From: Paramoeba atlantica | Lineage: Eukaryota > Protista > Discosea | NCBI GenBank assembly: GCA_977017575.1 | Contig: CDRNVI010000027.1 | Coordinates: 1-64,000, forward strand | Reading direction: 5' to 3' | Length of the DNA stretch: 64,000 nucleotides | Part shown: in pieces, positions 1 to 62,215 of the stretch | Position numbering within the stretch: the stretch's first letter is position 1 | Layout: each line of letters opens with the position of its first letter | Position numbers and translations under genes: made by a program | Notes under the pieces: generated by a model | Told to the model about the DNA's origin: nothing | Seen by the model: the letters and a program-made list of their open reading frames with translations, nothing else | Database searches by the model: none

Positions 1-130
1 GAATGAGGATTGTTCTAGAGAAGGAGGGGTGGCACTGTGGGTACTAGGTTCGTCTGCTCAATTTTATGCCAAAAAGGTGAAATTTCTTAAAAAACTTGCA
101 ATTGACGTTTTTGACCCTCTTACCAATTTA
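1..130 (+). mobile_element. 3' end of a Tc1/IS630-type element (transposase C-terminus at 3-47 plus downstream sequence)
   Basis: 3-47 translates MRIVLEKEGWHCGY*, nearly identical to the end of the transposase at 20738 (MRIVIEKEGGHCGY*); the downstream sequence also resembles 20739-20800. Confidence 0.8.
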
Positions 131-161
131 TGATACTGCTAAATATACGGGAAACGATATA

Positions 162-253
162 CAGGGATGGGCACGAAAATGTGGGGGGGGGGGGGGTTAA
201 AATTTCTATAACTTGGACAATTTTGGAAAGTAGCACCGCATTCGAGAGCTCTC
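162..253. repeat. Left terminal inverted repeat of the DD32E Tc1 family; partner end not found
   Basis: TA|CAGGGATGGGC…GGGGGG TTAAAATTT…AACTTGGACAATTTTGGAAAGT…CGCATTCGAGAGCTCTC aligns with the TIR at 32929-33015 and, inverted, with 20865-20949. Confidence 0.75.
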
Positions 254-1763
254 GCAGAGTTACGTGTCATGTGACCCGCAGGTAGACCTGAGGGAATTGG
301 ATCTTGCCCACGCTTTCCACCGCCGTAACGTCACAGCATCGTCCTCCTGGCCAGTTAAAATTGGTGCAATACACGTAGTCTTCCCATGCTTCTGCGGTGC
401 AAAGAAACATGGGAAGGGTGTTGCCAAGCATGTCGTTCATAGTATCAACCGATGGGGGATAAATACTTTTGGTCGCGAAAAGTGATGTACGGTGGACTCA
501 ACCACTATCACATTACTAAAAAATTTCATAGCATGCTGTTTTTCGAGACGTTGCAGGTGATAGCGCAATGAGTTTTTCTAAGGAGTTGCTTTTTTTTGCT
601 TCGTCCTTCAACTGCGCCAAGATAGGAGCCACCGAAGTTGACATTGGTTTTCGCTTGTCATCAGAGAAGAGGTCAAGGGCATTTCGTAGGGGAAGCATTT
701 TCACTCGACCCCCTACCCCCCCCCCTAGCCAGGTAGGGGTCAAAAAAGCTAATTACAACTTTTTTGGGTTCATTTTTTTTGAATGTTTCGGATGAGGAAC
801 AGTAGTAAAGTAGGTTAGAAGACGTGGAAAAGGAGTGCAAAGTAATCTCTAGTATTTAGCCATATGCACTTTAGCCTCCTTGACCAAAAGAAAAAGTTTA
901 CTATAGTCCCGGAAGGCATTCCTAAACGTTTCCGGTTAATCTTCAGAAAAAAAGCGAAAAGTTTCAATGATGGACCCGGGGCTAAGTTTATGAATTTTTC
1001 GAGTGTCTTATAGGGACTTAAGTCGCTCTCAATCGATCGCGAGTGCCGTGCGCTTCTCGGGGCACACGAGGCAGGGAAGGTAAGCACAGGGGGGCGGTGT
1101 TTCTTCGTCGTGAATCACCAACAAATGTACCAATTTTAAAAAAATGTACTCTGTGAAAAACAAATCGACTTTTTTGCGGTTTTTTTTCCCGGTTTAGGTA
1201 TGATACAGGTGTCCACGAGTGAAAAGGACCTCGGATTCGGAACCGATTGGGTTGAAAAACAGTCCCATACAAAATATTTTCCAAATCGAACAAAATGCAA
1301 GACCTGTAGGGGGGGGGGGTAAAAGAGGCTGAACACTACTGTATATGATATGCGCAAAACAAGCGTCACCGAGATCTGCAAAAATGCAATAAAATTAGCC
1401 CAAACGAAGACTTTACACAAATTTTAGAGGGGGGTGACTTATCGTGTCCCTAGGTTTATACAGTAGTACTATATTTACAACTCCATCCCAAATTTTTGAA
1501 ACCGTTCTATGGACATACCTTAGCGAGCACGGAGTGTACGTACGATTTTGCCGTGTACATGCGAGTACGTACTCGTGTACGTACAGAGCAGTTTGCTTGT
1601 TTTTAGTTTTGTAAAAAGCTACGTTTATGGGAATACCTCAAGAGGACCGGAAAAAATAGTTTTATTTGATGTACGTAAACGTTTGAAAAAATCATGTTTT
1701 TCTGAACTAAATTTGTTTAACATACGCTTTCTACAAAACTTGATTAACAATTACTTGTTCTAT

Positions 1764-3059
1764 ATGACGTCCATGTCACAGATATCTCCAAGCACGTATG
1801 GGAGCTCTGATAGCATGAGCTCAGGTTACACGAGCTCGGAGTCCACGAGTTGGGAGGCAACTTCGGAGAGCAGTTCCGGAAATTCACAAATTTGCCGATC
1901 AGGCTCTTCTGACGTTTCATCTTTGTCTTCTCACTCACCGGAGTACGCAAACTCCGATTCAGAGGATGATCCGAACGGGGATCAGAAGATGAGTCAAAAG
2001 ACTCGGAATCTCGGACTCTGGGTATGAATTTTTTGAAGAGACTCTTTTCAAAATACATCAAGATATTCAGGGTCTGTTCAAGAAGATAAAGATATCATCT
2101 TTATCCAGTTCCTCCGAAGTTCGTGGAACTTGAAAAATGTTTCGACATCCATCTTATCGAAGGCAGCAGAAGGCCCCTATGCCAAAGTGTTCGACCTCAG
2201 TCCTCCAATCAACGAACTTCCAATCCCCATCCCTCTGACCATCCATCTATTGACCCTCAGCACTCTGATGCACTCTGATGTTCCACCTACTGACTCTCAG
2301 CCCTCTGATGTTCCGCCTATTGACCCGCAGCACTCTGATGTTCCATCTATTGACCCTCAGCACACTGATGTTCCGCCTATTGACCCTCAGCACACTGACG
2401 TTCCATCTATTGACCCTCAGCACACTGATGTTCCACCTATTGACCCTCAGCACACCGATATTCCATCTATTGACCCTCAGCACTCTGATATTCCACCTAT
2501 TGACTCTTGGCCCTCTGATGTTCCACCTATTTACCCTCAGCACACTGATGTTCCATCTATTGACCCTCAGCACACTGATGTTCCACCTATTGACCCTAAG
2601 CACACTAATGTTCCACCTATTGACCTTCAGCACACTAATGTTCAACCTATTTACCCTCAGCACACTGATGTTCCATCTATTGACCCTCAGCACACCGATG
2701 TTCCATCTATTGACCCTCAGCACTCTGATATTCCACCTATTGACCCTAAGCACACTAATGTTCCACCTATTGACTCTCGGCCCTCTGATGTTCAACCTAT
2801 TGACCCTCAGCACACTGATGTTCCATCTATTGACCCTCAGCACTCTGGTATTCCACCTATTGACCCTCAGCACACTGATGTTCCATCTATTGACCCTCAG
2901 ATCTATAGACCTCTGATCGCCAACCTGATTTTCGCAACGCTCGCCGTTCTCTCCACTCGAGCTCTAAGGAAAATGAAAAGGGCGAAAACGCGAAATCGTT
3001 ACGACGCGCAGAACGCGAAAAGGAAAAGCGCAAAGCTGAAGCTCATCGTCATCGAGTAA
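1764..3059 (+). pseudogene. Ser-rich/acidic ORF continuing in the same frame (two TGAs near 2025-2036) into a 10-aa-repeat ORF with a basic C-terminus; function unknown
   Basis: ORFs 1548-2027 and 2130-3059 share a frame; repeat QHTDVPPIDP; ends KMKRAKTRNRYDAQNAKRKSAK; no recognised domain. Confidence 0.3.
2241..2900. repeat. 30-bp minisatellite, about 22 units (CAGCACACTGATGTTCCACCTATTGACCCT)
   Basis: Directly visible head-to-tail units with point variants. Confidence 0.95.
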
Positions 3060-3389
3060 AATTCGAAGCAATACATATTGCTTACATCGAAATTCGAAGC
3101 AATACATATTGAGTACTGTGACCCCCCCCTTTAATATGCACCCCCCTCTTACCTCCCTTTAATATGCACAAAATGGAGGCTGAAGAAAATTTGTGCGGTG
3201 GGACCCCCCCCTTTAATATGCACAAAATTGAAGCTGAAGAAAGTTCGTGTGGTGGGACCGATTTGATTTTTTCTTTTTTTATTCTGTTTGGAAAGTCACT
3301 TAGGCTACCAACTTCCAACATTAAGTTACTCAATACTGTAGACTTTTTAGCTTTCTCTATCTGCTCTATCTGTTTCTCTTCGTCAACAC

Positions 3390-4019
3390 ATGTCGCACAC
3401 GGACGGTGTAGCGACAACCGTGCATATGATAAAAGGTCCGCTGTCGAGTTGGGCTCGGTCAGCGCCACCCTCCCCCCAGGTAGGGGAACGGGCACCTGTT
3501 CTACAAACGAATGCACCTCCAACGGTAAACGAAAAAAAACGGCAGCGAGTTGAACTCACAATTTACGACAAACGCGTGATTTGTCGATCCCAGGATTCGG
3601 TGAAGGCTATTCGAGAAATGTACGGGATATCTCGGAGAACAGTGTACGACATCCGTGCGACTGGGATATTGAATTATCAAAAATTAATAAATCGAAATAT
3701 GGGGAACCAGCATCGTAACAGAGGGTTTAACACCAAAGGAGGTGATTACAACGACCCGGAGTCTGTCACGTACAATAAGGCAGAGGCAATGTGTGAAGTT
3801 CATCGTGCTTGTGAAAAGGCATCTTCCTTGTGGTGTCCCTTGACCAAATCCATTGTAATCGATCTAATACGCCAAAACACGAAGTTGACTTCGGTTTCAG
3901 CATTGGAAGACACATATGCACGCTTTCGGAAGCATTATGGGTGGGTTGGAGAACGAAATAGTTTTTTTGAATACTGGAAAGACAAGATTGATGTTAGGGT
4001 TCAATCGCCCACCTTCTGA
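3390..4019 (+). CDS. CENP-B/pogo-type DNA-binding protein (HTH_psq-like plus HTH_Tc5-like)
   Basis: VELTIYDKRVIC…AIREMYGISRRTVYDI resembles the first HTH; CPLTKSIVIDL…YARFRKHYG resembles the Tc5 HTH ending RFKKR.G. Confidence 0.65.
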   Translation: MSHTDGVATTVHMIKGPLSSWARSAPPSPQVGERAPVLQTNAPPTVNEKKRQRVELTIYDKRVICRSQDSVKAIREMYGISRRTVYDIRATGILNYQKLINRNMGNQHRNRGFNTKGGDYNDPESVTYNKAEAMCEVHRACEKASSLWCPLTKSIVIDLIRQNTKLTSVSALEDTYARFRKHYGWVGERNSFFEYWKDKIDVRVQSPTF

Positions 4020-4533
4020 TCTAATTACCACTGATTCACGCATTGTTGCCGTTCTCTTCTTTAACAAACACTTTATTTTGGTAGAACTCCGAAGGTCCCT
4101 GCTCACAGTGTATGACAGCTATGAGGCGTATTCTCCATTCGCCCGAAGCGACTTTTTAAAATTATTCTTGGAACGGGCAACTCCTCTTCTTGGGCAAGAA
4201 AGTGGGAACATTCGTGTTAAATATGAAAAGATCTTACAACAGGAGCCTATGCTAAATGAATGCGGATTGCATGTTGTTAACAACTTATGCTCTTTGTTAT
4301 TCTACCCTGCAACTTTTTCTAGGGTTGACAATGTGCTTGTCAGAAAAAATCTTTCCAGGTCCTGGTGGCCTCGTGGTCCAGGAATTCCTCTACCCCCTGA
4401 ACGAACAACAAATTCCGAAGAAACCCTTGGAGAAGTGTCCGTGGAGAACGTGTCGGAAGATGATTCTGATTGTTCTATAATTGTGAATTTAGTGAATGAT
4501 TTGAACTTTGAAGATGAGTCCGTTAACAGTTGA
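3916..4533 (+). CDS. Ulp1/SENP-like (peptidase C48) cysteine protease domain
   Basis: Ordered motifs NKHFILV (His), VYDS (Asp), LQQEPMLNECGLHV (Gln, Cys); overlaps the upstream ORF in another frame. Confidence 0.7.
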   Translation: MHAFGSIMGGLENEIVFLNTGKTRLMLGFNRPPSDLITTDSRIVAVLFFNKHFILVELRRSLLTVYDSYEAYSPFARSDFLKLFLERATPLLGQESGNIRVKYEKILQQEPMLNECGLHVVNNLCSLLFYPATFSRVDNVLVRKNLSRSWWPRGPGIPLPPERTTNSEETLGEVSVENVSEDDSDCSIIVNLVNDLNFEDESVNS

Positions 4534-5366
4534 AAACTTTATGGGGTCAGGGACATTGTCAAGCAAATGTTGGGGCTTAGCGAACCTCACCTCCCGAGCT
4601 TTATTTCCGTCCACAGCAACGGTTCATATTGTAATATTAGTTTTTACCACGGAACTGGGTTTTTCTGTGGTTTTTACTCGGTGTCGTGTAAGTCCTCGGA
4701 GTGCTTCTCCAGGCATATTCTACTATGGGCGTTCAACAAACTCGAAATAATGGGAGCTTGCGAAAGTAATTCGTATTGTATATATAGGGACAAAAATGTA
4801 CATGGATAATGTATATGATACAGTATATTAAAATGTATAGAGTGGGATAAAAAGAAGCTATCCGAGTACTAATTTAAATTAGTAAATTAGTAAATTAGTA
4901 AATTAGTACTAATTTAAATTAGTATCCTATGAATCAGTTACATTAGTAACTAGTATTTAGGTATACACATTTTTTATATTTTTTACTTTAAGCACTTTCT
5001 TGTTTATTAGTGTTACACAGGCTTCATGAAAAAAATCTTTGCTCGAGAACAATTCCTTCACTCTCTTCCCCTCCGTCATCGACCCTTGCTTCGCTACCGA
5101 TGTCATTGGCACCATGTACGCACTTTCTACCATCCCCCTTGTTTCACCCTTTTCTTCCCCCCTTTATTATGTACCCCCCCCCTTATTATGCACCCACCCC
5201 TTTATTATGCACCCCCCTTTATTATGCACCCCCCCTTTATTATGCACCCCCCCCCTTTATTATGCACAAACTCCAAAAACGTGTGCATATTAAAGGGGGG
5301 GGTCACAGTACAATCTTCTAAGAGAAGTATAAAAGAGAAATATCGCATGCGTGCTCTTCTAACATA

Positions 5367-5696
5367 CTGTGACCCCCCCCTTTATACTTCGCCCATTTTG
5401 AGCAGTAACGAAGTATAAAGGGGGGGTCTGAATTTTTTCCCCGCTGTAAAAACAAGTGTAAGAAAAAGGCCGTGCCGCTTCGCGGCGCGGCTCATCCAGT
5501 TTTCCTGTCTTTCCTTCTATCTCACCTTCCATTTCTGGAAGGAAAGAATGGGAACGTTCTTGTTTTTTTTCCAAAGGTTTTAGAAGAATTATGAAAAATT
5601 AGAAAAAAAATCGCCCCCCCCCTTCGGGGGGGCACACGAAAAACGAAGTATAAAGGGGGGGGTCTGACCAGCGAGGTATAAAGGAGGGGGTCACAG
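5367..5696. mobile_element. 330-bp MITE with pogo-like TIRs
   Basis: TA|CTGTGACCCCCCCCTTTATACTTCG … CGAGGTATAAAGGAGGGGGTCACAG|TA; terminal 17 bp shared with the 3116-5308 element. Confidence 0.9.
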
Positions 5697-5699
5697 TAT

Positions 5700-6200
5700 T
5701 ATGATTACAAGTTTCGGTCCAAAAGAAGTACGCTTCATCTTTCTCCCGAGAAAAGGGAGGCCCGTGTGAATTTCTGTCGCGCACTGCTTAAAGAAGATGA
5801 AGGCCTTTTCGACGTACGTGAAACATTGTGCGCCGGATAGATCACCGTATTGTAGGAACGGCCCCTTTTCAGAGGGAAGTACCTGGTGCTCAAAAATTCG
5901 TAAAAGTAGCATAGAAATAGTACTATAGAAAGGTGATTCTTCGGGATCATTGGATTCCATATCCCAGGAAAAATCCCCAGGCGATCTACATGGACGATGG
6001 AGCTCCTCCGCATCGTTCTAAGCTTACTTCTTTGTGGTGGGAAAGTATGTTCGCCAGATCGAGAACTTCCCCTTGCTTGAGGCGATACGTTTCTGTCGAT
6101 GGAAACCCTCTGCCGTTTTGGCCTGCGGATTCTCCGGATTTTAATTCGGGGTCCGACAAAGTCAAAATTTTTGAAATTTTTAGGATTATCAAAAAACAAT
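5700..6200 (+). pseudogene. Degenerate Tc1/IS630 transposase fragment with long D-E spacing
   Basis: IYMDDGAPPH…WW…WPADSPDFN in ORF 5933-6265; similar to 37892-38305. Confidence 0.75.
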
Positions 6201-6549
6201 TGACCCAAAAAAAAGTAAAAATATTTTTCCAAAATCGACTCCTAAAACGTATTTTCAGAGCTTGAGACCTCAGCTACCATTCTACGACGTTTGTTTTTAT
6301 AGATTCGCCTCCTACCCCTACTGGTAAGGCATCAAAAACGCCCCAAATTCGGGGTAAAATTTCCCAATTTTCGCCGAAAAATCGAGCGTTTTTATCCAAA
6401 AAAACAGGGGTCTGAAAATATATTGTGCCCCCCCCACTTATTTGTCACCACTTTTTCGAAAACAGGACAATTTATTTGGTTAGATGAAACAAAAGTCCCA
6501 AACTTTTTTCTTTATTTTGGGAATCTCCAAAGCATTCGGATAAAGTTGG

Positions 6550-7373
6550 CTTCACATACCCGACTTATGTGACTTCCATAACTCCGCATTACCCAGTCCC
6601 AAGCCTGGGGAAGGACCACGTGCATACATAAACGTATACACATGCTCCGGGGGAGGAGGGTGGAAGAAGTTATCGGGACATATACCCCGGGAAGTTGTGG
6701 GGATTTTTGCCACGGGAAAATATCGGGACTTGTGCCCGGGGAAAATATCGGGACTTGTGCCCGGGGAAGATATCGGGACTTGTGCTCGGGGAAGATATCG
6801 GGACTTGTACCCGGGGAAGATATCGGGACTTGTGCCCGGGGATGATATCGGGACGTGTGCCCGGGGAAGACATCGGGATTTGTGCCCGGGGAAGATATCG
6901 GGACTTGTGCCCGGGGAAGATATCGGGACGTGTGCCGGGGGAAAATATCGGGATTTTTGACCGGGGAAGATATCGGGATTTGTGCCCGGGGAAGATATGG
7001 GGACATGTGCCCGGGCAAGGCATCGGGACTTGTGCCCGGGGAAAATATCGGGATTTTTGACCGGGGAAGATATCGGGACTTGTGCCCGGGGAAAACATCG
7101 GGACGTGTGCCCGGGGAAGACATCGGGACTTGTGCCCGGGGAAGACATCGGGACGTGTGCCCGGGGAAGACATCGGGACTTGTGCCCGGGGAAAATACTA
7201 CTTACGTACACTGTACTACGAGGGGCATTACTACGAAGGGTATGATTGGGGAGGTAGGATCTAATTGGACTAGGTAGCGCTAGTATCTAATTGGGCGAAT
7301 CGTCTAAATGAAACGGGGGACTTGGGACTTGCTATGCAAAATTATGGAAGTCACATAAGTCAGGTATGTGAAG
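6550..7373. mobile_element. Foldback-like element: about 55-bp imperfect TIRs around a 25-bp minisatellite
   Basis: CTTCACATACCCGACTTATGTGACTTCCATAA (6550) versus inverted copy ending 7373; no TSD seen. Confidence 0.75.
6705..7197. repeat. 25-bp minisatellite, about 19 units (TGTGCCCGGGGAAGATATCGGGACT)
   Basis: Visible tandem units; explains the many overlapping repetitive ORFs. Confidence 0.95.
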
Positions 7374-7705
7374 TGTAGGTTTCTCATCCTTGGGTGGGAA
7401 GCCATATTTCACCTACGGCGTAATGTGATCATTTGATGGGTTGGGTGGATGTGATCAGGATTTTTTTTGTTCTGTGAACGAATTTGGTACAGTATTGAAT
7501 GCGTATAGTATGTACGCATTCGTGCAGTGAAAAATACTTTTCGTCGGAAAAATATCGAATATGCTTTGTGGCTCCCTTCTATTCGATTTTTATGAATCAA
7601 AGATGATCAAAAGTATGTTATAAACCATGGCAATGGTATCAAAGTTATTAATTGTCCAAGACTACTATACTCGAATTACACGTGTAGTTTCGACCACAAC
7701 ATATC

Positions 7706-8158
7706 ATGGCTCGTGTTGCAAAGAAGCCTAAAAAAGGCAGTATTCCAGCGAAGAAAGCGAATACGCGAGACCGGTCTTCCGGCACTTCCTCCCAGAGTGA
7801 CCCCATGGAAAAACCTCGCGAATGTCCGACGAGCCGCCGCCGGCGAAGTTCGATGCACAGGGTCCCTTCCCCCTCCCCAGAGCGGCCACGTCGAACTCGT
7901 CGAGGGTCTCGTTTCCCGTCTTACTTAAATTCCACTTGTTCGTTCTCGCGGAATTCAACCCGTAGCGAACGCCGTCAAAAGGAAGATATTAAGAAGGAAA
8001 AAGCTCGAGAACGACATGAAAGGTCATTGGGAACTGCATGTCGTCGCTTGCTCGAACAAGCGAGAAGCGAAATTGGAACGCCTGAGTCAAAATCTTTCAT
8101 AGAAAAACTTCGTAATCTTCGAAACTTCCCCTTCGAGGGCGTCCACCCTGCATCCTGA
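7706..8158 (+). CDS. Basic Arg/Ser-rich ORF, in frame with the downstream transposase across one TGA
   Basis: ATG-initiated, 150 aa, same frame as 8159-9034; no domain recognised. Confidence 0.3.
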   Translation: MARVAKKPKKGSIPAKKANTRDRSSGTSSQSDPMEKPRECPTSRRRRSSMHRVPSPSPERPRRTRRGSRFPSYLNSTCSFSRNSTRSERRQKEDIKKEKARERHERSLGTACRRLLEQARSEIGTPESKSFIEKLRNLRNFPFEGVHPAS

Positions 8159-9034: not shown

Positions 9035-9321
9035 TTTTACGGGCATAATCTCTCTTGGGCGATTACGTTTCATCTATTTTTTGGGACAAGATTTTCTCTA
9101 TAATAGGTAGCAAAAAAACCTTTCGAATGCTAAACTTTTTTATATTCATTCTTATTTCTTTGGTAGAACGAACTGAGGTGAACTATCTACGGGTACTATT
9201 AGGTGACACTCATGCCTACACTACTAGCACACATTACCAGCGCAACGGTGATATTTAATCAATAGCTCTATACAAAAGAAAAAAAAACGAAACATTCGAA
9301 CGGTTTTTTTGCTGACTGTAT

Positions 9322-14611
<5,290 letters not shown>

Positions 14612-14749
14612 AAATTTGGGCACCGTAAAAATCACCCACTATTGGCAAACTTTTTTGCCAATAGTGGGTGTACCCCCCCTTTACAATGGACGGTACTGTA
14701 TTCGTGTCATTTGTTATGTCTAAGAAGTATCAGTGCTAGGCTTTTTCTC

Positions 14750-15265
14750 CGGCTGAATTTTCTGATTTTCCATTTCTAGAAGGGAAGGCTTAGAACGTTC
14801 TTGTTTTTTTTTTTAAACTTTTAGAAAAATTGCGAAAAATTAAAGAAAAATCGTCCCCCCTTCGGGGGGGCCACACAAAAAACGAAGTACTGTACCCCCC
14901 CGTTTATAATAGCCTCGCTTTTGCCCAAATGAACCTATAAATGGGGGAGGGCGATTGCAGATTAAGAGTTGGCACAGAAATCGCCATACATTCGGGCGAG
15001 GAACCAGGAATTATTCAATCGCTAAGTGGGCCCCGGCGCTCTTCCAAAGTAAAATGTCCAGCAAGAACACGCGCCATACCTCGAAGAACCATATGAAAAT
15101 AAATATCAAAATATTAAAGACGGTGCAAGAAAATTAAAAAAAAATCCCCAGTTTGCCAAAAAAAGAATCTATAAAGGGGGGAGGGGTCGAGGCTATTATA
15201 AACAAGGGGGGTACAATATAAAGGGGGGGGGTCTGACCAGCGAAGTATAAAGGGGGGGGTCACAG
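14750..15265. mobile_element. Second copy of the 5367-5696 MITE (left end unclear) carrying a nested MITE
   Basis: 14770-14887 aligns with 5527-5648; right TIR GGGGGGGGTCACAG|TA ends at 15265. Confidence 0.8.
14890..15216. mobile_element. Nested 327-bp MITE with TA duplication
   Basis: TA|CTGTACCCCCCCGTTTATAATAGCCTCG … CGAGGCTATTATAAACAAGGGGGGTACAA|TA; removal restores CGAAGTATAAAGGGG of the host MITE. Confidence 0.88.
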
Positions 15266-16408
15266 TATATAGATTATGAATACAGGAACACTGTTTTCCT
15301 TCCTACAACTGGTAAAAGTGTACGTGTGGCTTAGACGAGGGATTCTGATATTCTATGAATATCACTGGCCTATGGCCACTTTACAGTGGCCATGAAAAGA
15401 AGTATGCACAGAAAATACAGAGGGATAGAATTGTAGACTTAAATTTATAACACCTAAACCGTTGCTTCGCAGAATGATTACAAAACGAACTCTCTCGAAT
15501 GGTTCACGGCGAAGTGCCGACAGAACTCCTCCATACCCAACTATCCGCGCCAAGCATCAGTCACGACCGAAGACCGCGTACTCTCCAAGATTATCCCGTC
15601 GGGTCTTAGAATATCTTCATTTTCAAGAACCCAGGTGGGGTAACTTCTTTTCTCTGGAAAATCAAATGAGCAGTATTTCGTGTCCTGACTCTTCAACAGC
15701 TTTTTGGAGCTCCTTCAGTACCAAGTTATATCTCAGGCTATATCTTCCTTGCTCTAACGAGGTCTGACAACCGGATAATACATGGCGGGTAGTTTGCGTC
15801 TCTTTCTCGCAAATAGAACACTTTAGGTTGGTGTGTGTCGAAATTCCCCAACGATGCATGGCCGCCCTAGATGGAAGCGGCGTGACGGTCATTAGTGAGG
15901 CGGCAAATCTTGACAGGGCAGTATTGTTGAGGTTGTTCATAGCAGACGCGAATACTTTTGCCAGTTCCCCTTCGGTGGATAGGTCCCACCATTGTGCTGC
16001 GATCGGCGTTCTTTGCCGTAGTCGAGGAATCAGATTGTTCTCGTACTCCTCACGCAGGACCGAGCGCGCTTTACGTGCGTCGTTCAGCACTTGTTGGGAC
16101 TTACATGCAGGGCGTACCTGCCCTCCGTTATGTTTCCGTATTTCATCTTGTAAACGATCTTTTCTAACGTTTTGCGAACATTCGAATCTTTTGAGCTGTT
16201 CATGCGCGTGAGTGCTTGCGCGGTTGATTCATACCATAGCAGGGATAGGCTCGTGAGGTTCCACCCTCGTCGCGAGTACAGAACTTCAGTGCTCGCCGTT
16301 CCTGCCATTTTGATCCATTGGCGAAGATGTGTCGTGGCCCGTTTTTGTAGGCACAGTACGAGGCTCAGAGTTAAGGATGGGTGTACAACGAAAAGGTACC
16401 GGATACGT

Positions 16409-23018: not shown

Positions 23019-24416
23019 TCATACCTCTGGTACATGATCACGATATTTCATCCCGTCAATACTGAAACCTGGGATTGGATACTGACCTGCAAACCCTTCC
23101 ACATCATTTCGAAGACTCTCTATCTCAGCATTCTCGGATAGCTTGGCTACAAAATCAACCAATCGTTTGCCAGCACGGAGCTGAATGTCCAACGCAATCT
23201 TCACGGCGCGTTCCATAAAGACGGCAATAAGTCTCATTTCCGCTTCTTTCATTCCTCGAGAAGTAAGCGCTGGTGTCCCAATGCGAACACCACCTGGAGA
23301 AGCAGCACTTTTATCACCCACAACAGTGTTTTTATTTATGCTGATCGATGATTTTTCTAGTATCTTCTCATATTTCGAACCTGTCAGGCCTAGTGGACGT
23401 AAATCCCAAAGTAGTAAGTGATTGTCAGTCCCACCGGTAATCAACGTATAACCTTTATCTATCAAAGCTTTGGACAGCTCCTGAGCGTTGCGAATGATTT
23501 GGCGACTGTACTCCTTAAAATCTTCTGTGGCTACCTCTTTCAACTGTACTGCAATGGCAGCGATAACATTTTGATGGGGACCGCCTTGAAGGCCAGGAAA
23601 GACTGCCATATTGATCCGCTGAGCAAAATTAGTTGAGTTACCATCGCGCCCGAGCTTACGGTAAAATATCATGCCAGCTCTTGGTCCACGAAGGGTTTTA
23701 TGAGTTGTTGTAGTCACTATGTCACAATGTGTAAAAGGAGAGCGCAGTAATCCGCTGGCCACCAGACCTGAGACATGCGCCATATCACACATTAACAGAG
23801 ATTCTGTTTTGTCCGCAATTTCCCGAAATCGTCCGTAGTCAATATCGCGTGGGTAAGCGGATCCACCGCAAATAATTACTTTTGGAAGGTATATTTCAGC
23901 AATTTTCTTCAATTCTTCGTAGTCAATGATTCCATCAGAATCAAGGGAATACGGAAGCGATTCAAAAAATATTGAGGTCGCACTGATTCGCTTTTTAGCT
24001 GTATAGTAGCCATGTGTAAGATGTCCCCCCGCAGGAAGATCCATACCCATGATACGGTCATGTGGTTGTAAAAGGCCAGTGTACACGGCGAAATTGGCCG
24101 GTGATCCAGAATAAGGTTGAACATTGACCCCCCACTCCTTCGCATCCAAATGAAATGCCTCCAACGCACGTGATTGGCACAGTCCTTCGATTTGGTCAAT
24201 AAATTGTGTTCCTCCGTAATATCTAGCTCCGATCTCCCCTTCAGCATACTTATTAGTTAGATGTGAACCTAAACATTCTAGCACTGCTGATGAAGTAAAG
24301 TTCTCGGACGCAATCATCTCCAAACCGAAGTACTGCCGCGCTTTTTCTTTTTCAAGAATGTCATAGACTGCGGAATCTTGCTCTTGTAACAGTCGATTTT
24401 GGGGTAACTTTTTCAT
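23019..24416 (-). CDS. SHMT: Serine hydroxymethyltransferase, eukaryotic type, intronless
   Basis: [15 protein letters not shown]…[26 protein letters not shown]-lysine motif [32 protein letters not shown]. Confidence 0.98.
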
Positions 24417-32928: not shown

Positions 32929-34468
32929 CAGGGGTGGGCGCCTTCAGAGTGGGGGGGTCTAAAATTCGTAAAACTTGACCAATTTTGGAAAGTAATAGCG
33001 CATTCGAGAGCTCTCAAATAGTCTGGTGTAATGGCAACATCCGTTTCCCGTTTTTAGACATTCGAGATAAATGACAGAAAAACAAGGAATTTATTTTTCC
33101 CCGAAGATGCAATTTTTCAGTTTTTTTGGCTTTTTTTAGTTTTTTTGCGCCGTTAATGCCTCAGAAACGTGTACGATCGCGAACATCACGGTTTCCCTTC
33201 CAGAGAGATGCTTATTCACCACCTGGGAAGGTAGGGCCGTCGCATCGCATGCTTCTCGTAGACCATTACTTTCGTTCTGGGTCCTACAATGCTACAGCAC
33301 GCCACTTTGAAGTAGCGGAGAGCACTGTGAAGCGATGGGTCATTCGTTACAGCGAAACTGGTGATGTCGAAAGCATTCCCAGACGTCTGAATTTTACAGT
33401 TAGGACATCACTGTTTATCGGAGAAGCACTCCGCATAGTAGATGAGGGTACACGGGATCTTCCTTATGGTGTGGAATCATGGTGCGCTCTACATCGCGAA
33501 CTTCTATCCAGAGGGTTTCAGTGTTCCAGACGCACTTTGGCTCGAGCTTTGAAGCCCGATATTATCCTCCGCGTAGTTCAGCGTAAACCACGACTAACCC
33601 AACAGCATAAAGACGTTAGAGTCCGATTCTGTAAGGACATGACGGGCTGGAGCGAACACCAGCTTGATAATATTATTTGGTGTGATGAGAAAAAGTTTAC
33701 CTGCAAGAAGTCTACCAAAAACGCCTACCTTTGCCGACGGTCCGACCCTGTAAAAGAGCAGCTAGGTGAGCTGGAAGCGTGGGTAGGGGGCGATGGTATA
33801 ATGGTGTGGATGGGGGTAAGCATAAAGCATGGATTTCATCTGCACATTTTTCCTAATAGAGATGAGCAGGGAAATAGAGTTACTGTGAACGGGGCTGTTT
33901 TCGAAGCTGCCATGACCAAGCGTAATGGTCTTTTGAACTACCTACACAGGCACCGTGCAGTTGTTGCTATGGACAATTGCCCTGCGCACAACTTGGCAAG
34001 GCGTACTTTTCAGCAGCAAAACGTGCGAACGCTCCCCTGGCCCGCAAAGTCACCAGATCTCAACCCCATCGAAAACTTGTGGAATATCATGGATCAGCAC
34101 AAGGATCGCATGCGACCACGCAATCGCGCAGATCTCCTCTCTTCTATCGAGAGTGCATACGACGCACTTCAAACCGATCTCAAAAGTACTTGCGTGAAGA
34201 CCATAAAGAGTGTCTCCAAGCGCTTTCAAATCGTTATTGAGAAAAAAGGGGGAAATTGTGGGTACTGAGTTTTTTTTTCGAAAAAAAGGACTTTTTCGCT
34301 TAAAAAATAAAGTTGCAATTCGTGTTTGGGACCATTCTAGCTTTCTTTGATTCCCGTAAACTTTCGCAGAGTGCTTTTTACGATTACACTAGACTATTTG
34401 AGAGCTCTCGAAAATTGAACAAGTTTTACGAATTTTAGACCCCCCCACTCTGAAGGTGCCCACCCATG
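32929..34468 (+). mobile_element. Apparently complete 1540-bp Tc1/IS630 transposon with TA duplication
   Basis: TIRs CA(G/T)GGGTGGGC(G/A)CCTTCAGAGTGGGGGGGTCTAAAATTCGTAAAACTTG; TA at 32927-28 and 34469-70. Confidence 0.95.
33156..34268 (+). CDS. Intact DD32E transposase (about 370 aa)
   Basis: HTH (ATARHFEVAESTVKRWV), IIWCDEK, AMDNCPAH, WPAKSPDLNPIENLW, GGNCGY*. Confidence 0.93.
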   Translation: MPQKRVRSRTSRFPFQRDAYSPPGKVGPSHRMLLVDHYFRSGSYNATARHFEVAESTVKRWVIRYSETGDVESIPRRLNFTVRTSLFIGEALRIVDEGTRDLPYGVESWCALHRELLSRGFQCSRRTLARALKPDIILRVVQRKPRLTQQHKDVRVRFCKDMTGWSEHQLDNIIWCDEKKFTCKKSTKNAYLCRRSDPVKEQLGELEAWVGGDGIMVWMGVSIKHGFHLHIFPNRDEQGNRVTVNGAVFEAAMTKRNGLLNYLHRHRAVVAMDNCPAHNLARRTFQQQNVRTLPWPAKSPDLNPIENLWNIMDQHKDRMRPRNRADLLSSIESAYDALQTDLKSTCVKTIKSVSKRFQIVIEKKGGNCGY

Positions 34469-37342
34469 TATGTAGCATGGGAAATTCTTGTGCAATTGTC
34501 TCCAGTATTGGCTGAAGAAAGGAGCAGAAGTATAGAGTCGACAACGGCGACCCTTGGCGAACTCCAGCCGAACTTTCAACTGTTGAAAACAGTTCCCCGT
34601 TCTTTCCGTAAAAGAGGAGTTCAGACGCTGTCCCATATTCGGCAAAAAATAGTCGCTGAAAAGGCCGAAGGGCGCTCAAAGCAAAAATTGCTTTTGCAAT
34701 CTCGCCGCGTGAAGGGCTATTAAAAGCGTTCTTCATATCCAACGAGAGGATAGCACACCCTTCCATATATCGTCGATTGAGTTCGTGAACAATAGTCTCG
34801 CAGCCAGCGCGACTCATTACCCCATGCTGCATCGGCAGGAAAAGCTTTTCAAATTTATGTTCGTTACGCAGAAGGATTAGTCCAGCCAACTTGAGAAAAA
34901 TTTCTCCCATTGCCACCGGTCGAACGGCTTGAGCTGTTTTAGGGAGTGCAACTAAGCGTGCTCTCCGCAGTCTGCGCATTACATCCTTGGATAGCATTCC
35001 GTTAATTAAATCGCACATCATGTGGCTTAGACTCGTGCAACAGATCTCATCGTCCAAGAGCAGACGAATGATGGCCTCTGTGGTACCGGATGGACCTGGG
35101 GCGGCGCCTTTTGCGAGTCTCTTTCCTGCTTCTCGGAGTTCATGGGGCGGGATACATGCTACCTTCGGGGCGTCGGTGGGAAGCTCAAAAGAAATCGGTA
35201 AAGATGGGTGTAGTTTTTGTAATTGAGACAATTTTTCTTCATCCCCTAATGATGTTTCGGTGATGTCTTGATCTAACACGCGCGTCGCTTTCTTAATCGC
35301 TCCTTCCAAAACCAGTCGGGTCGCTTTTTTGCCTGCTCTCAGATCTTTAGCCTTTTGCTCCACTTCACTGTTTCCTGCGTTCGTCTCCTGAGTTTGAATT
35401 GGGCGGCGACGACGCTTTTTTCCAATGAGATGGCGCACTGTAGCTAACGAATGTTTCATTGCCGACATGGTTCTGTGCCAGATTTGATTTCGTTGGTCGT
35501 AAGAAGAATCTGCGTAATCCCGCATTATGTCACGATAGATAGAGACAACACAGGGCACAAACTCTGCACTGACAGTCCGCATGGTTGGCATTGGATCGAA
35601 ATCCAAGTCTGCTTCCGTATGAGAAAATCCTTGATTACTTGGAATTCCTTTAGCGTCCACATCAATGCTGCTTTTTGAATCCTTTCGATTTAGCCATTGT
35701 ATTGAATAAACTCTCACATTAGAGTTTGGAGGAATGAACCCACAAAATTGCTCGCCGCATTTGTACCCTTCTATACCTTCGTACTGGAGAGACATCCGTC
35801 CGATTCCGGAACGCTTCTTAACTGACTTAACCACACCTTTCGATATATTTATCTGCGAGGAATCGCTGAAGCACCATGCCATCAAGCACGAGTCCCCTTG
35901 TTTCGCCGTTTTTGATGAATCCCAGATGGTATCCGGTGCCAGTGGAAACTTCTCCGTTGGGTTTATCGACTTATTCAACTTCTCTATCATCTCGGCCTCC
36001 TTGGCAACTTCTATGACAGACTCTGTTTCAGCAGGAAGTTCAAAGTTCGGCATCGTGATATTGTTTTCGTCAACTACCTCGTGCAGTGTCGTAGACCCGT
36101 CAACCCTTCCCGTGCTCAATGGGGTGTCCTCAGGAGTTAAATAGTCGGCGTATGTCTGACATTCGACATCTGCGTCCTGCGTCGGCTGTTCGGCTGAAGT
36201 TTCATCATTCGTCGCAGTGATCGACTCAGTCGTCGTAGTGCCTGGCCAAACGACGCTTGCCTGAGACTCGGTATTGACGTCCTGCATCCCTAACGTTTGT
36301 TCCGCTGAAGATTCTGTATTTATCGTAGTGATCGGGAGGCAATCTAACTTTGATATCGTTCTTCTTTCTTTTCCTCGAGCGGTTTCTGCAATTTGGCGTT
36401 CCCTTGTCTCACGCTCCTCGGCTGTAGGAACACCGTGCAGTGTCAGCAGCCCATTCCACAGTCTTTCCGACCACTCCAGCAACCTTACCGAGTGTTTGAA
36501 GACGCGAAGATGGTTCAGAGTGGGGAACTTCATTACTTGAGCTTATCGTTGTGTGATTTTCTTGTCGCTGTTTTCCAATGATCACTTTTATGCGAGGTTT
36601 GCGTGAGGGGATTGCCGTTGTTGTTGTTGTTGGGTCCGGGCCGTTTGTCTCCGAAGAGATGTGGCCTCCTCACTTTCCGCGTAGGTAGCGGTGCGGGTGC
36701 TCCACGCGGGGAGTAAATCTACAGTGCGAGAGCCTAGGCTCAACCGCAGCATGTAGACACCCGACTTGCCTCCTCCGGGAGAATGAGGTGTCATGCCCTA
36801 GTTGTTTAGTGTCTTGGTATCTTGACACCGGGAGACCCATGCAAAGCGCGTGGCGATGGGGGTGTTGGCGAGGGCGGCGCACCGGGGCGAAAAGGGAGGC
36901 CAATTTATGGTATTAACGTAAATGAGAGCCCTCGCCTAATTTCATAACGTAAACTTTCAGACAACAAGGTACAGGGGTAGAGGGGATTGCCGTGGTCACT
37001 GAGTCTTCGCACTGCCTACGTGACGTTTCAGCTGCTTTCTCTTTTATTTTCTTTTCTTCCTCTGCGCGTGCGTCCAACTGCTTTTTCAACTCACTGAATG
37101 ACATGCGAAAATTTCTTTCTGTATCATCTTTTCCGGTCGGCAGCGGGAGTAGACTGGGGAACCTAAGCTCTATTGCGTTTTCGGCCGACGAGGAATCTGC
37201 TGGAGGAGACTTCGTCGCCGGAGGGGACGATGGCGATGGCGGTACTGCTGATTGCGCCTGCGACCGATAAGGTTGTTGTTGTTGTTGTTTAACCCGTTTG
37301 GCCATGACTGGCTATGGGTTCAGAGTACACCCTAGTTATTTA

Positions 37343-46641: not shown

Positions 46642-48885
46642 CTACGGGCGCCGTAGGCTCTCAATATAAGTACCGATGGAGGGCAGTGGTGTCAAGTCTT
46701 CAGCGCTGGATTTTCTCGTGAAGGGATCTGCTATTTGGGCGTTGGTAGGTACCCACTTTACTTCCAGGTTAGTGTTTGATGGGATGTACTGCATCCACCT
46801 ATTGGCAGTGAAGTTAGTGCTTGCACGCCTCTGGAGGGCCATGGCTACAGGCGCGTTGTCGACGTTCAATAGAATGTCCCGATGTCCTTTTCTGACTGCT
46901 GCCATAATTCCACCAAGAGCCGCACTCAGCTCTGAGTAGAATATATGGGCTCCGGGCTTTGTCATGCCTTGTTTTGCAGTTTCGAGAATGCCTTGATTGA
47001 ACAACAGAATAGCCCATACGATTGAACTGGCATCAGTCCAAACTTCCACCTTTTCTTCTTTGGGTGTATGACCTATCTTTTTTAACCAAACATTTCGCTT
47101 GAGTGCGGAAAATGCATCAGTCAGTTCGCCTAACAGGTGGTCGGTCGGAGAGAAGGAGATCTCCCAAGACTTTTCGTCGTGCACTTTTCTGGCAACTTTT
47201 CCTAGTGTTTGAAGAAGGTGTGCAAAAGTGCATAGTGGGATTTTCATAACCGTTGCCCTCCACATTAGTAAGCCAGAAAGCGTATACAGTTCCACAGCTG
47301 TCCACGTCCCATTCCCGATTATGTCATTGTATCTTGAATACGCCTTTTCAGTCCACTTTTCTGACATGCAGTACTTCTTATTTTTTAGATCAAATTCAAT
47401 ACCAAGTACGCACGCTTCCTGTAGTGGCTTCATGGTGAGATCATCTACTTCTAGTTGAACTGCGTGGACTCGGGCGCGAAATTCTTTTGCATGGTTTTCT
47501 ACTTCTGACTTGGATTTTCCAAACAAAAGAAAATTGTCTACCCAGGCCAATCCAATGTCCCGGACAATGCAATTTGAAACTCGCTGTGCAATAGCCGGGG
47601 CCCATGACCATCCCATGGGCATGGAAGAAAATTGAATACTGCATGTTTCTCCTCTAGCGTGACCTAAAACCGCTCCAAAGTAGGATCGGATCTCGGGAGT
47701 GAGGGAAAATTGGTAAAAGTAACTCCGTGCGTCCGCGTGAGCCATCCATTCCGAATCTAGCAGATTTTCAATCACGTTATGTATGGATGGTAGGTGCATT
47801 GCGGGGGGGCATTCGAAAACTCGGTTGAGTTTCCTACAATCGCAGATTAGACGAAGTGTGGAGTCTTTCTTCGGAACTGTAAAGGTACGATGTACTACTA
47901 TCGGTCCTTCGGTCTTCTCTACAACCCCCATGCGTAATAAGTCTGGTAAATGATGTCTCATAAATCGAGATACTGGTCGATTGCCTTTAGGTGCACGCAG
48001 CATGTGCGCGTGAAAGGCGTTGACGTTCTGTAGTAGATGTAAAAAGTCTAGACTGCCATCGTCATTCATATTGTTCAGTATAGAATATGACAGTCTTGTG
48101 GTTGTGATAGGAGCTATTATTCCCTGATTTTTGTACGCTCGCACGCTCGGTGGTCGGGTGAGCTGCCCGTGAGACATAGACTGATTGTTTGTGTCTTCAA
48201 TTTTCTTCGTTGCAATGTTAGCAATGTCCGTTGAATTATGCACGTAGATAGGTTCGGGATTCGGTTCGCCTATAATGTTATCGCTATCTAGCGTGATCTT
48301 ACCGATGTGCAAGGGGAACCTACCTTGTAATTGACGTTTTAGTATGTAAACAGCTGAATTAGTTTTCTTGTCATGTCCTTTGGTGTTTTCTGGGTTCACA
48401 GTAATTTTGTCGCGTCCTGTAGCCCTAGGGACAAGGCCACTTCCAGTCGAGGGAGATATATCCACAATGTCTCCAGATCTTTGTGCTTGGCCAACAGCTG
48501 TATTACCGACAGTGGAACTCCCTCTCTGAGGAGTGATACTAGAGCCCCTCTTTTTACATAATGTGCCGACAACTCTGCTTTCACCCGCTTCAGCACGGCA
48601 TTGGCTCTCAGCGTCGTTAAAGTCGTGAACTTGTCTTCTGGCTTCAGCTTGTCCAATTGGTCCATGAAGATTTTCCACTCCGTCAAGTTGCAAGTCATTG
48701 GAATAGCAGTCCCTACTCTGAAGGGATCCCCTTTGTGAGTCGGAAACGTTACTCCCAGTATTCTCCGCTCGAGATCTACCACTTGTAAATCTAATTTCCT
48801 CAGATGTTTGACATCGTCTATTCTGCTGCATGTCTTCCACGCCAAGGTCAGGCCCGCGGCTTCGTCCGGAAGCAGCCATTCGCAC
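46642..48885 (-). CDS. Reverse transcriptase plus RNase H (TATE/DIRS type); true start uncertain
   Basis: RLICDCRKLN, DARSYFYQF, SMPMGWSWAP, AWVDN, VWTDASS, IFYSEL, NVDN, QIADPFTR. Confidence 0.92.
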   Translation of the reverse strand: MRMAASGRSRGPDLGVEDMQQNRRCQTSEEIRFTSGRSRAENTGSNVSDSQRGSLQSRDCYSNDLQLDGVENLHGPIGQAEARRQVHDFNDAESQCRAEAGESRVVGTLCKKRGSSITPQRGSSTVGNTAVGQAQRSGDIVDISPSTGSGLVPRATGRDKITVNPENTKGHDKKTNSAVYILKRQLQGRFPLHIGKITLDSDNIIGEPNPEPIYVHNSTDIANIATKKIEDTNNQSMSHGQLTRPPSVRAYKNQGIIAPITTTRLSYSILNNMNDDGSLDFLHLLQNVNAFHAHMLRAPKGNRPVSRFMRHHLPDLLRMGVVEKTEGPIVVHRTFTVPKKDSTLRLICDCRKLNRVFECPPAMHLPSIHNVIENLLDSEWMAHADARSYFYQFSLTPEIRSYFGAVLGHARGETCSIQFSSMPMGWSWAPAIAQRVSNCIVRDIGLAWVDNFLLFGKSKSEVENHAKEFRARVHAVQLEVDDLTMKPLQEACVLGIEFDLKNKKYCMSEKWTEKAYSRYNDIIGNGTWTAVELYTLSGLLMWRATVMKIPLCTFAHLLQTLGKVARKVHDEKSWEISFSPTDHLLGELTDAFSALKRNVWLKKIGHTPKEEKVEVWTDASSIVWAILLFNQGILETAKQGMTKPGAHIFYSELSAALGGIMAAVRKGHRDILLNVDNAPVAMALQRRASTNFTANRWMQYIPSNTNLEVKWVPTNAQIADPFTRKSSAEDLTPLPSIGTYIESLRRP

Positions 48886-52528: not shown

Positions 52529-54793
52529 GTGTATGCTGCGAACTTTTCGTTTTCCAAATGGACAGAGCAAGACACCGATCATCTTCCCATTCCGACCTGC
52601 CGAGCCATATCGGCAGAATTTGCGCCGAGGGTGGTTGCAGTGTATCGTGAAATAATCAGAATGTATCAACAAAGCGATTATCTTGAAAGAAACAGAATCT
52701 GGCATCGTGCATTGTCGGCTATGAAATTCTCTTTGGCTGAGACGCGAAAGAGCTACGTCAGAAAACGGCGCCGCAAACCTATAATTACCGGACATGAGGC
52801 AATAGAAGACGAACAGTTAGCGGGCGACTTACGTGCTATAAAACGAGCCACTCGATTAGCCCTTGAGGGAAGCGTGACGAAGGCCGCCAAGATAATGGGC
52901 CAAAGCTTTAAGCGGAGCAAATTGACTGACAAAGAGACACTAGAAAAACTTTTAGCTTTACATCCCCAGCATCCTTGCGCTTTCCCACTGCCAACTGATG
53001 CCCCTGTCATTGCAGGGATAAATGCCGAAGAGCTTAGAAGCGCCGGACGACGATTGGCGAGAGGAGCTAACCCAGGCCCGACTGGTACCACAGACATAGT
53101 AGTACGATTGCTACTAGATGACGAGATCTGCTGCAACAGTCTTGTCATCATGGTGGAAGACCTTGTCAACGGTTTCTTGAATGATGGAGTTATGAATCGA
53201 CTAAATCGATCACGCCTCGTCGCAATTAGCAAATCAGAAACAGAAGTCAGACCGGTAGCAATGGGTGAAGTGATCACAAAGCTTGCAGGAATAACTCTCC
53301 TACAGCGGTACGAAAACACGCTAGCGCCATTATTTGAACCCATACAGCATGGGGTACTCTCCCGTGCTGGGTGCGAAAAGATTGTACACACACTGCATAA
53401 CAAGTACGAAAAAGGACAGTGCATTCTTTCGCTCGATCTCAAGAACGCCTTTAACACCCCATCCAGAATTGACATCGCAAAAGCCGTGTTTGCTTTTTCA
53501 GCGATGAGACCTTTCCAACGCCTCTTTCATGCTGAGTACTCCAGGGAATCTGAACTGTTGTATTACGGAACAGATGGGCAGCTTGCGGGAGTAGTACCGA
53601 GCACAGCTGGAGTGCGACAGGGCTCACCGTTGGCTACCCTTTACTTCTGTACTCTTATGCAACCAATCTTGGAGACAATGTCAATGGAATTCCCGGAAGT
53701 CAAAATTTTCGCGTACATTGACGATGTGAATCTGTGCTCTTCCAATAAAGCCCAACTCGAATCAGCATTTTTCCGTTTCAAAGAATTGATCGAGGATAAA
53801 AAGTTGGTTCTTTCCTCATCCAAATGTGTCTGGTTCGGGGGGGCATCTGGGGCACAGATACCTATAAAACTGGAACAGTGCGGAGTGAAGACAGAAGAAA
53901 AAGCGATCAAGATTCTTAGAGCGTACATAGGTAACAATGCAACCATCAAAGAGAAGCTGATGCAGAAGCTTGAGAAACATAACGAAATTTTTAGACGCCT
54001 CAAGATAATGGGTCCGAACAATATTTCACTCCGACTTCTCTCCAAATCAGTGAACGTCCGACACTCTTACTTCATGCGCGTGCACGCCCCGGACAATACT
54101 CAAGATTCGGCACTTCAGTTCGATAAAGAGGTAGGAGATGTATTGAAACATTGGTTGGGACCATTGGACCAAGAGCAAATGGAGCTAGCACGACTCCCCG
54201 TTAGCGAAGGCGGGTTGGGTCTTACTGCATGTAATTCGATACGACGCGCAGCTTACGCAGCATCTCGACAAACGATTTTCGAGCGCCATAATTCTTTTTC
54301 AGCTCAGATTGTCAATCGAAATGCTGTGCGTGCGTCAGAAGAAATACGAAACAGCACAGACACCAATGAAGCGAGCGAACGATCCCAGAAGCTATCCCAC
54401 ATAGTAAGGTCCACAACCTTCAAAGGAAATTACGACTGGCTGCAGTCAACTGCAAAGTTGGTACCGTCACATCTTTTTAGGCTAGCGGTATTACCGAGAT
54501 TAGGAATGCCCCTCCAATCGTCAATGAAAGAAATTCGATGCCCCGGATGCCAAACTGAACTCAACCAACATTCGGTTCTGACCCATCTACCAGGATGCAC
54601 TCAATGCAAGGGAATAAATGCCTCATTCAAACATAACACCCTGGTTCACTACATACACAAGATGTGTCTAAATGCAGGAATTCCTTGCGAGAAAGAGCCT
54701 CGAAGATTCAGCTCAGTTCACTGCACTACATGCCGAGCACCCAGGGGTGTGAACTCTTATGTTATAATTTTGCCGTACGTTGACACTTTTTGA
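52529..54793 (+). CDS. CRE-like RT protein C, truncated before the PD endonuclease motif
   Basis: RPVAMGE, DLKNAFN, GVRQGSPL, AYIDD, CPGC…HLPGC, HN…EKEP; homology ends after CTTC. Confidence 0.9.
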   Translation: MYAANFSFSKWTEQDTDHLPIPTCRAISAEFAPRVVAVYREIIRMYQQSDYLERNRIWHRALSAMKFSLAETRKSYVRKRRRKPIITGHEAIEDEQLAGDLRAIKRATRLALEGSVTKAAKIMGQSFKRSKLTDKETLEKLLALHPQHPCAFPLPTDAPVIAGINAEELRSAGRRLARGANPGPTGTTDIVVRLLLDDEICCNSLVIMVEDLVNGFLNDGVMNRLNRSRLVAISKSETEVRPVAMGEVITKLAGITLLQRYENTLAPLFEPIQHGVLSRAGCEKIVHTLHNKYEKGQCILSLDLKNAFNTPSRIDIAKAVFAFSAMRPFQRLFHAEYSRESELLYYGTDGQLAGVVPSTAGVRQGSPLATLYFCTLMQPILETMSMEFPEVKIFAYIDDVNLCSSNKAQLESAFFRFKELIEDKKLVLSSSKCVWFGGASGAQIPIKLEQCGVKTEEKAIKILRAYIGNNATIKEKLMQKLEKHNEIFRRLKIMGPNNISLRLLSKSVNVRHSYFMRVHAPDNTQDSALQFDKEVGDVLKHWLGPLDQEQMELARLPVSEGGLGLTACNSIRRAAYAASRQTIFERHNSFSAQIVNRNAVRASEEIRNSTDTNEASERSQKLSHIVRSTTFKGNYDWLQSTAKLVPSHLFRLAVLPRLGMPLQSSMKEIRCPGCQTELNQHSVLTHLPGCTQCKGINASFKHNTLVHYIHKMCLNAGIPCEKEPRRFSSVHCTTCRAPRGVNSYVIILPYVDTF

Positions 54794-61900: not shown

Positions 61901-62215
61901 TTGGCAGCCACACACGCGAAGAGCCATCCAGGACAACTGATGAAAGAAGCGACTGAACGTAAAATAGAAACGTATGTCCGATCAGGTATGATATCCGAAG
62001 AGTCGTTTCTTTGCCTACCGGTGCTCTCCTCTGGGTCACTCCACGCGAACACGTTAAACCTGATTCACGAACTTGCAGATGCGTCGCTTACGGACAGGAA
62101 CAATGCCATCTTATCATTTAAACTATTGCTACAAGAGCTAAATGAGTCACAAATTTATGCTCAACTGCGAAAGTTCTTAGCAGTAGATACGGAAGCGTCT
62201 CAAAAGGCAATTTAA
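58967..62215 (+). CDS. CRE-like element E: Tudor-like N-terminus plus RT-RLE in one frame, broken by a single TGA at 59459-59461; (TTG)n tail about 62412-62431
   Basis: ORFs 58967-59461 and 59531-62215 share a frame; AFIDD, CPGC…HIPGC, SGPD…YDLTVIHEL. Confidence 0.92.

Follow-up and report, generated by a model that had tools for sequence, protein, structure and literature searches.

A probable internal-deletion derivative of a pogo-type transposon family encoding a putative Ulp1-like protease in Paramoeba atlantica

The window analysed here is a stretch of 64,000 nucleotides from the Paramoeba atlantica assembly GCA_977017575.1 (contig CDRNVI010000027.1, positions 1 to 64,000, forward strand). 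Near its start lies an element, at 3116–5308, in which a reading frame with a predicted DNA-binding region overlaps a second frame resembling a SUMO-type protease. This copy is very probably a non-autonomous internal-deletion derivative of a cut-and-paste family of pogo type, about 3.1 kb long, whose gene combines a CENP-B-like double helix-turn-helix (HTH) region, a DDE_1 transposase core and a C48 protease. The loss of approximately 1,037 bp between two GAGAA pentamers took out the whole DDE core together with the linker and the first block of the protease, joining the remaining HTH and protease parts out of frame while leaving the 26-nt ends and the subterminal arrays intact. The apparent combination of DNA binding and protease without a transposase at this locus is then a deletion scar, neither designed as a module nor a signal for recoding.

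Ends, target site and repeats

The element is bounded by terminal inverted repeats (TIRs) of 26 nt at 3116–3141 (plus strand) and 5283–5308 (minus strand), the left being 100% complementary to the right, with the duplicated TA target site at 3114–3115 and 5309–5310. The complementary arms as such extend over 3113–3141 and 5283–5311, also at 100%, and come down to 26 nt once the TA, itself a palindrome, and a single G/C pair that matches by chance are removed. Inside the TIRs, end-like motifs recur in both subterminal regions. On the left (3152–3259, plus strand) they lie at 3152–3170 and 3202–3223 within a 54-nt tandem duplication and run direct, in the same sense as the motif of the left TIR; the array on the right (5157–5267, plus strand) consists of about six 19-nt units that are inverted relative to the right end. 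With up to three mismatches, the 22-nt end motif occurs seven times in the window, compared to an expectation of zero.

Contigs from four public sequencing runs are similar to the element up to exactly 3114 and 5310 and continue beyond these points into many different flanks, the family contigs diverging on the left before 3114. TA flanks are also found on five related elements lying on other contigs, in the ENA assembly ERZ24900291. The ends and the TA target are therefore those of a multi-copy mobile family, and 3116–5308 is a real mobile element belonging to it. An earlier note, made from the sequence of the window alone, had described a pogo-like TIR element with a TA duplication and subterminal repeats echoing the TIR, and its boundaries and all of these features were borne out. 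A search of the window against Rfam gave no match.

One internal segment is private to the window copy: 168 bp at 4752–4919, partly a tandem repeat of the type AAATTAGT, stand in place of 4 nt (ATTA) in the family. The segment is missing from two related elements of the family (L001 and L003), and contigs from all four runs lack it and join 4751 directly to 4920.

The two overlapping reading frames

Both reading frames lie on the plus strand, ORF1 at 3390–4019 (209 aa) and ORF2 at 3916–4533 (205 aa), and they overlap from 3916 to 4019. The native coding part of ORF1 (3390–3948) comprises a disordered leader followed by two three-helix HTH lobes and ends with the motif ...KHYGWV. In an AlphaFold model computed with ten family sequences as input, the two lobes are formed by helices within residues 58–111 and 130–183. 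Against Pfam, ORF1 gave only weak CENP-B_N and HTH matches with E values of 0.002–0.005, all of them under the cut-offs (CENP-B_N: E 0.0026, 17.8 bits against a cut-off of 21.2), and a profile search of PDB found nothing. CENP-B(1–129) [PDB:1hlv] nevertheless tops both fold searches, if weakly (Foldseek E 0.25, VIA Z 6.0), and in the exhaustive VIA-align search this match spans 115 residues and takes in both lobes. The likeness to a CENP-B-type HTH-HTH protein that the earlier note had seen in this frame is consistent with the two-lobed N-terminus, the sub-threshold Pfam match and the leading fold match. The native part is 95–96% identical to three sister sequences (P0001, P0027, P0029), and homologues of ORF1 in the same assembly run on past ...KHYGWV into the start of a pogo catalytic region (...FFGDETAMF...).

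The protease remnant occupies 3949–4533 (plus strand), in the +1 frame relative to ORF1, and has an acidic low-complexity tail. Searched directly, ORF2 matched nothing in Pfam (for PF02902, nothing at E values up to 10) and no PDB sequence. An exhaustive HMMER search of the representative library with ORF2 returned 13 relatives, all short fragments; the relatives P0011, P0016 and P0017 exceed the cut-off of Pfam PF02902 (Peptidase_C48) with 28–40 bits compared to 20.7. A profile of the ORF2 family matches Ulp1 [PDB:1euv] with an E value of 4.6e-4 and also SENP1, and residues H52, D67, Q109 and C116 (codons at 4069–4071, 4114–4116, 4240–4242 and 4261–4263, plus strand) line up in the same order with the catalytic residues of both proteases. 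The core of the ORF2 model has pLDDT values of 85–94, its top Foldseek matches are SENP5, SENP1, Ulp1 and NEDP1 (E 9e-5 to 1e-3), and the best 50 matches are almost all C48 or other clan CE proteases. The relationship of ORF2 to C48 is therefore supported by its relatives, the family profile and the predicted fold. This agrees with the overlapping H-D-Q-C protease frame of the earlier note, which had suggested profile and structure searches of both frames: a C48 (clan CE) fold was recovered for the core of ORF2, while CENP-B_N stayed below its cut-off for ORF1. The catalytic residues, which the note had expected to be conserved in other copies, are all present in the window copy, but in P0006, a nearly identical sister, the catalytic Asp is replaced by Asn.

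Loss of the transposase core

The absence of a DDE domain from the window copy, as the earlier note had it, is confirmed by the Pfam scan and by comparison with a longer sister element of 3.1 kb (L003:1464–4550). This sister is 96–97% identical to the window copy over element positions 2–841 and 837–2199, and between these two blocks, exactly where ORF1 and ORF2 meet, it holds 1,037 bp that the window copy lacks. The three-way alignment shows GAGAA at both edges of the block in the sister (2298–2302 and 3335–3339) and a single GAGAA in the window copy, at 3949–3953 (plus strand), so that these 5 bp of microhomology are common to the left and right parental sequences. The window copy is also short of one T in the T-run before the junction (T2 compared to T3 in the sisters). 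It shares with other internally deleted elements the retention of the ends of a longer sister, the absence of an inner block, and microhomology at the junction.

Three parts are encoded in the 1,037-bp block and its counterparts in sister subfamilies, namely the catalytic core of DDE_1 type, a linker and the first of the conserved protease blocks. Four family proteins (P0019, P0021, P0022 and P0023) pass the cut-off of PF03184 (DDE_1), and the family shows the motifs FGDET, TDD..H and Q.HD; judged by eye from the last two motifs, the third acidic residue appears to be an Asp that follows the second by 29–30 residues in P0019 and P0022. In P0021, a protein of 784 aa found in an unrelated Logan sample, HTH, DDE_1 and C48 lie in one unbroken frame; a word-indexed search with this intact relative returned only itself, and its contig (L006) stops short of the element ends. 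The DDE_1 core and the protease occur together in L003, L010 and P0021, and the gene of the family, read from these sequences, is HTH plus DDE_1 plus C48 in one frame. The window copy lacks the DDE core because of its private 1,037-bp deletion. The reading of the earlier note, that the element carries a protease instead of a transposase core, accordingly describes what is left at this locus and does not hold for the family, whose members have both. The C48 domain is common to the full-length sisters and is not a one-off insertion, the outcome that the note had named as counting against its proposal.

The deletion also took part of the protease. Directly upstream of the part that the window copy retains, L003, P0021 and P0023 have a block of the form W..R...L..(A/C)VD..C. 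The window copy has lost this block, and its remnant aligns to residues 589–736 of P0021 (E 1e-12). With this N-terminal block gone, an HTH-tethered working protease is unlikely to be made from the window copy, and to judge from its coding sequence we would not expect a working protease of any kind from it.

The deletion probably arose by interrupted gap repair or by microhomology-mediated joining after excision, and interrupted gap repair after excision gives deletion spectra of this kind in Ac/Ds, P and mariner elements. With its ends preserved, the window copy presumably remains a substrate for the transposase of full-length relatives, which could excise it and reinsert it at TA sites, and it would move only with transposase from this source.

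The frame overlap

The earlier note attributed the overlap of the two frames to a 1-nt lesion or to a programmed frameshift at a run of seven T residues (T7, 3962–3968, plus strand). The frame change falls instead on the private deletion junction at 3949–3953, and the T7 run is native protease-region sequence 9 nt beyond it. In L003 the same run lies beyond the right edge of the deleted block, inside one continuous native frame. GAGAA begins at codon position 2 in the ORF1 frame (it would be position 3 in the sisters, with their additional T) and at codon position 1 in the native protease frame, from which it follows that the deletion joined two parts out of frame. The protease frame happens to have no stop in the 17 codons that precede the junction, and ORF1 continues downstream of it into a tail of 22 codons (3954–4019, plus strand; 21 residues and the stop) in which protease-coding DNA is misread. 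Since the junction is out of frame, the overlap is a scar of the deletion, and in the alignment with L003 the sisters show no overlap of reading frames at the corresponding place.

A purposeful product has nevertheless to be weighed, namely a transposase-free HTH-protease made through a frameshift or single-nucleotide slip at T7, which would tether a deSUMOylating enzyme to the repeats of its own family. Both frames are open, the four catalytic residues are intact in the window copy, and the loss of one base anywhere in 3954–4016, for example by polymerase slippage on T7, would fuse the frames; moreover, an in-frame fusion of HTH to a protease remnant does exist in a sister subfamily (P0009). 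That fusion, however, lacks the part of the protease with the catalytic His and Asp, and the N-terminal conserved block is deleted from the window copy. Read in the ORF1 frame, T7 forms U_UUU_UUU, a heptamer of the -1 type, whereas ORF2 lies at +1, and a shift to -1 would run into stops immediately. The slippery site therefore does not lead into the downstream frame, and the overlap is not conserved. The junction on which the whole arrangement depends was seen, among the called proteins, at the window locus only. We consider a purposeful product extremely unlikely, and programmed recoding appears neither needed nor supported by the sequences compared. The alignment of other copies, proposed in the earlier note as a search for a fused frame, did yield the unbroken HTH, DDE_1 and C48 frame of P0021, and an HTH-protease frame without DDE is found in P0009.

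A different possibility is that a base-calling error near the junction obscures an in-frame fusion of HTH and N-terminally truncated protease made by the deletion. Errors of this kind do occur in the data, as the ENA assembly of the locus has five 1-nt homopolymer insertions in the element, and the T-run before the junction is T2 in the window and T3 in the sisters. However, two assemblies agree base for base over 3930–3975, and restoring T3 would bring an immediate stop, with no fusion. A protease read in frame would in any case be without its N-terminal block. This explanation too has very little probability, and the out-of-frame deletion remains the preferred reading.

What the window copy could still encode is, at most, a DNA-binding stub of 209 aa consisting of 186 native residues and 23 others, the latter being two at the junction and the 21 read out of frame. 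It might compete for element ends, a speculation that leads to a further alternative, in which the copy was kept because ORF1 is useful, the HTH-only stub occupying the ends of the family and damping transposition. Truncated transposases that act as repressors exist in other DNA transposons, the KP protein of the P element being an example. The native residues of ORF1 are intact and, as noted, closely similar to the sisters, and the many end-like repeats are candidate binding sites. It is equally possible to explain the high identity by a young age of the copy, and the copy is single, at one locus; no RNA run contains the stretch. By analogy such a function may be entertained, but we regard it as unlikely. 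More broadly, that the window copy is not inert, with either the stub or an HTH-protease produced by slippage at T7 binding the end repeats and so regulating the family, either its transposition or its local SUMO state, seems to us very unlikely. The window locus is best taken as an ordinary broken member of the pogo-Ulp1 family.

Reproducibility of the junction and deletions in other copies

A contig of ERZ24900291 (L007, ctg3871l) represents the same locus, with window positions 1–8016 corresponding to L007:250–8290 at 99.4% identity over 8 kb. Its junction is identical to that of the window, including the stretch of base-for-base agreement mentioned above, and the deletion junction is reproducible between the two assemblies, which probably derive from the same data or strain. 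The differences between them are almost exclusively 1-nt insertions in short homopolymers (the five inside the element among them), plus indels of 18 and 10 nt. Since the ENA assembly carries indel errors, some of the frame breaks present in L003 may be assembly errors, and frame breaks in copies from ERZ24900291 are not to be taken at face value. Contigs from the four runs leave the window sequence at 3947 into DDE-coding sequence and rejoin it at 3949; these short-read contigs break at the junction and none bridges 3949–3953. Among the called proteins no second copy of the junction was found at another site, P0026 (on L007) being the same locus.

Other members of the family have lost different parts. 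In L001 and L008 the beginning of the DDE region is retained and the protease is absent, and L009 (1.7 kb) lacks about 1.1 kb relative to L010 (2.9 kb), including the DDE region and the His/Asp part of the protease. In one run there is a joint that retains only the element ends (3224 to 5249).

The deletion common to L001 and L008 was considered as proof that a deleted copy had moved, but this was dropped as their right flanks are homologous for around 540 bp beyond the element. These two protease-less derivatives of 2.0 kb (L001:3724–6266 and L008:2727–5257) differ in their left flanks, and the element may sit there in another, nested repeat or in a partial segmental duplication.

The left breakpoints of two independent derivatives, the window copy (3945–3948) and L009 (3043–3052, in comparison with L010:3043–4172), both lie within 1–2 nt of one codon, immediately downstream of ...YGWV and in a stretch rich in G; the two copies belong to different subfamilies with approximately 62–68% protein identity. 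With two cases only, this near-coincidence may mark a hotspot of pausing or breakage during gap repair.

Relationship to known transposons and proteases

The family shares with pogo/Tigger elements (IS630-Tc1-mariner) the TA duplication, inverted ends that are short, and an HTH region of two lobes at the N-terminus, whose best though weak structural match is CENP-B. Its members have a core of DDE_1 type in which, to judge from the motifs, the third acidic residue follows the second after roughly 30 residues. It differs in the addition of a C-terminal C48 protease, and the window copy differs further in having no DDE core itself. In the literature searched, we found no report that pairs a C48/Ulp1 protease with pogo or DDE_1.

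Domains of C48/Ulp1 type are known from other DNA transposons, namely Ginger1, in which such a domain is fused to the C-terminus of the transposase, and Mutator-like elements in plants and in animals (PMC2836005); in plant TIR elements, Peptidase_C48 also recurs as an accessory protein. The present family resembles these in placing a C48 domain in a cut-and-paste transposon, and resembles Ginger1 in the C-terminal fusion, but the transposase superfamily is a different one (integrase-like or Mutator there, pogo DDE_1 here). The protease of the window copy is moreover very divergent, with no direct Pfam match and, at the catalytic His, HF instead of the usual HW. In comparison with Ulp1, SENP and NEDP1 structures [PDB:1euv, 2iy0, 9gnv, 2bkq] it has the same core fold and the same order of His, Asp, Gln and Cys, but only about 100–115 residues align (TM approximately 0.35–0.40), and the window copy is without the N-terminal substrate-binding half.

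The fusion of a pogo transposase to a Ulp1-like protease would extend the pairing seen in Mutator-like and Ginger1 elements to the Tc1/mariner/pogo superfamily. For Ginger1 and Mutator elements, the removal of modifiers by their Ulp1 and OTU domains has been proposed in general terms (PMC2836005). For the full-length elements described here, the most plausible role of the protease would be the removal of a SUMO-type modifier from the transposase or from nearby chromatin proteins, and an anti-silencing role of the full-length family protein is conceivable. That DNA transposons have recruited proteases of SUMO type repeatedly and independently points to a general benefit open to testing, and the compact elements of the pogo-Ulp1 family, of about 3 kb, are suited to such tests.

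As a deletion derivative, the window copy has familiar counterparts. Non-autonomous elements formed by internal deletion include Ds, derived from Ac, deleted P elements and the precursors of MITEs. In common with these it has kept ends and a lost interior, microhomology at the junction, and a family with several different deletions. The difference is that here the deletion leaves two reading frames that resemble a designed two-domain module.

Neighbourhood of the element

Directly upstream of the element is an ORF (2130–3059, plus strand) with 21 tandem units of 30 nt (2270–2900), encoding a 10-aa repeat of the type PIDPQHTDVPS, and a 27-nt direct repeat (3059–3085 and 3090–3116) abuts the insertion site. 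Downstream, at 5365–5698, is a TA-flanked MITE-like element of 330 bp, whose ends share the CTGTGACCCCCCCC head of pogo-Ulp1 elements and then diverge (TTTATAC...). A related end lies at 15253–15267 (minus strand), with nested end-like motifs at 14650–15260. Adjoining the MITE-like element, an ORF fragment at 5933–6265 (plus strand) has motifs of Tc1/mariner type (...MDDGAPPH..., ...WPADSPDFN) and looks like the remnant of a different transposase family, of DDE_3 type.

Further along the window are a 25-nt unit repeated 21 times in tandem (6666–7197) and a nearly perfect (TATC)n microsatellite of 5.3 kb and about 1,325 units (9319–14611). A serine hydroxymethyltransferase gene lies at 23019–24416 (minus strand). 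The second half of the window contains five long ORFs with reverse-transcriptase (RVT_1) domains (34389–36533, 46642–48885, 52529–54793, 56048–58699 and 59531–62215), and the window is thus rich in retroelements.
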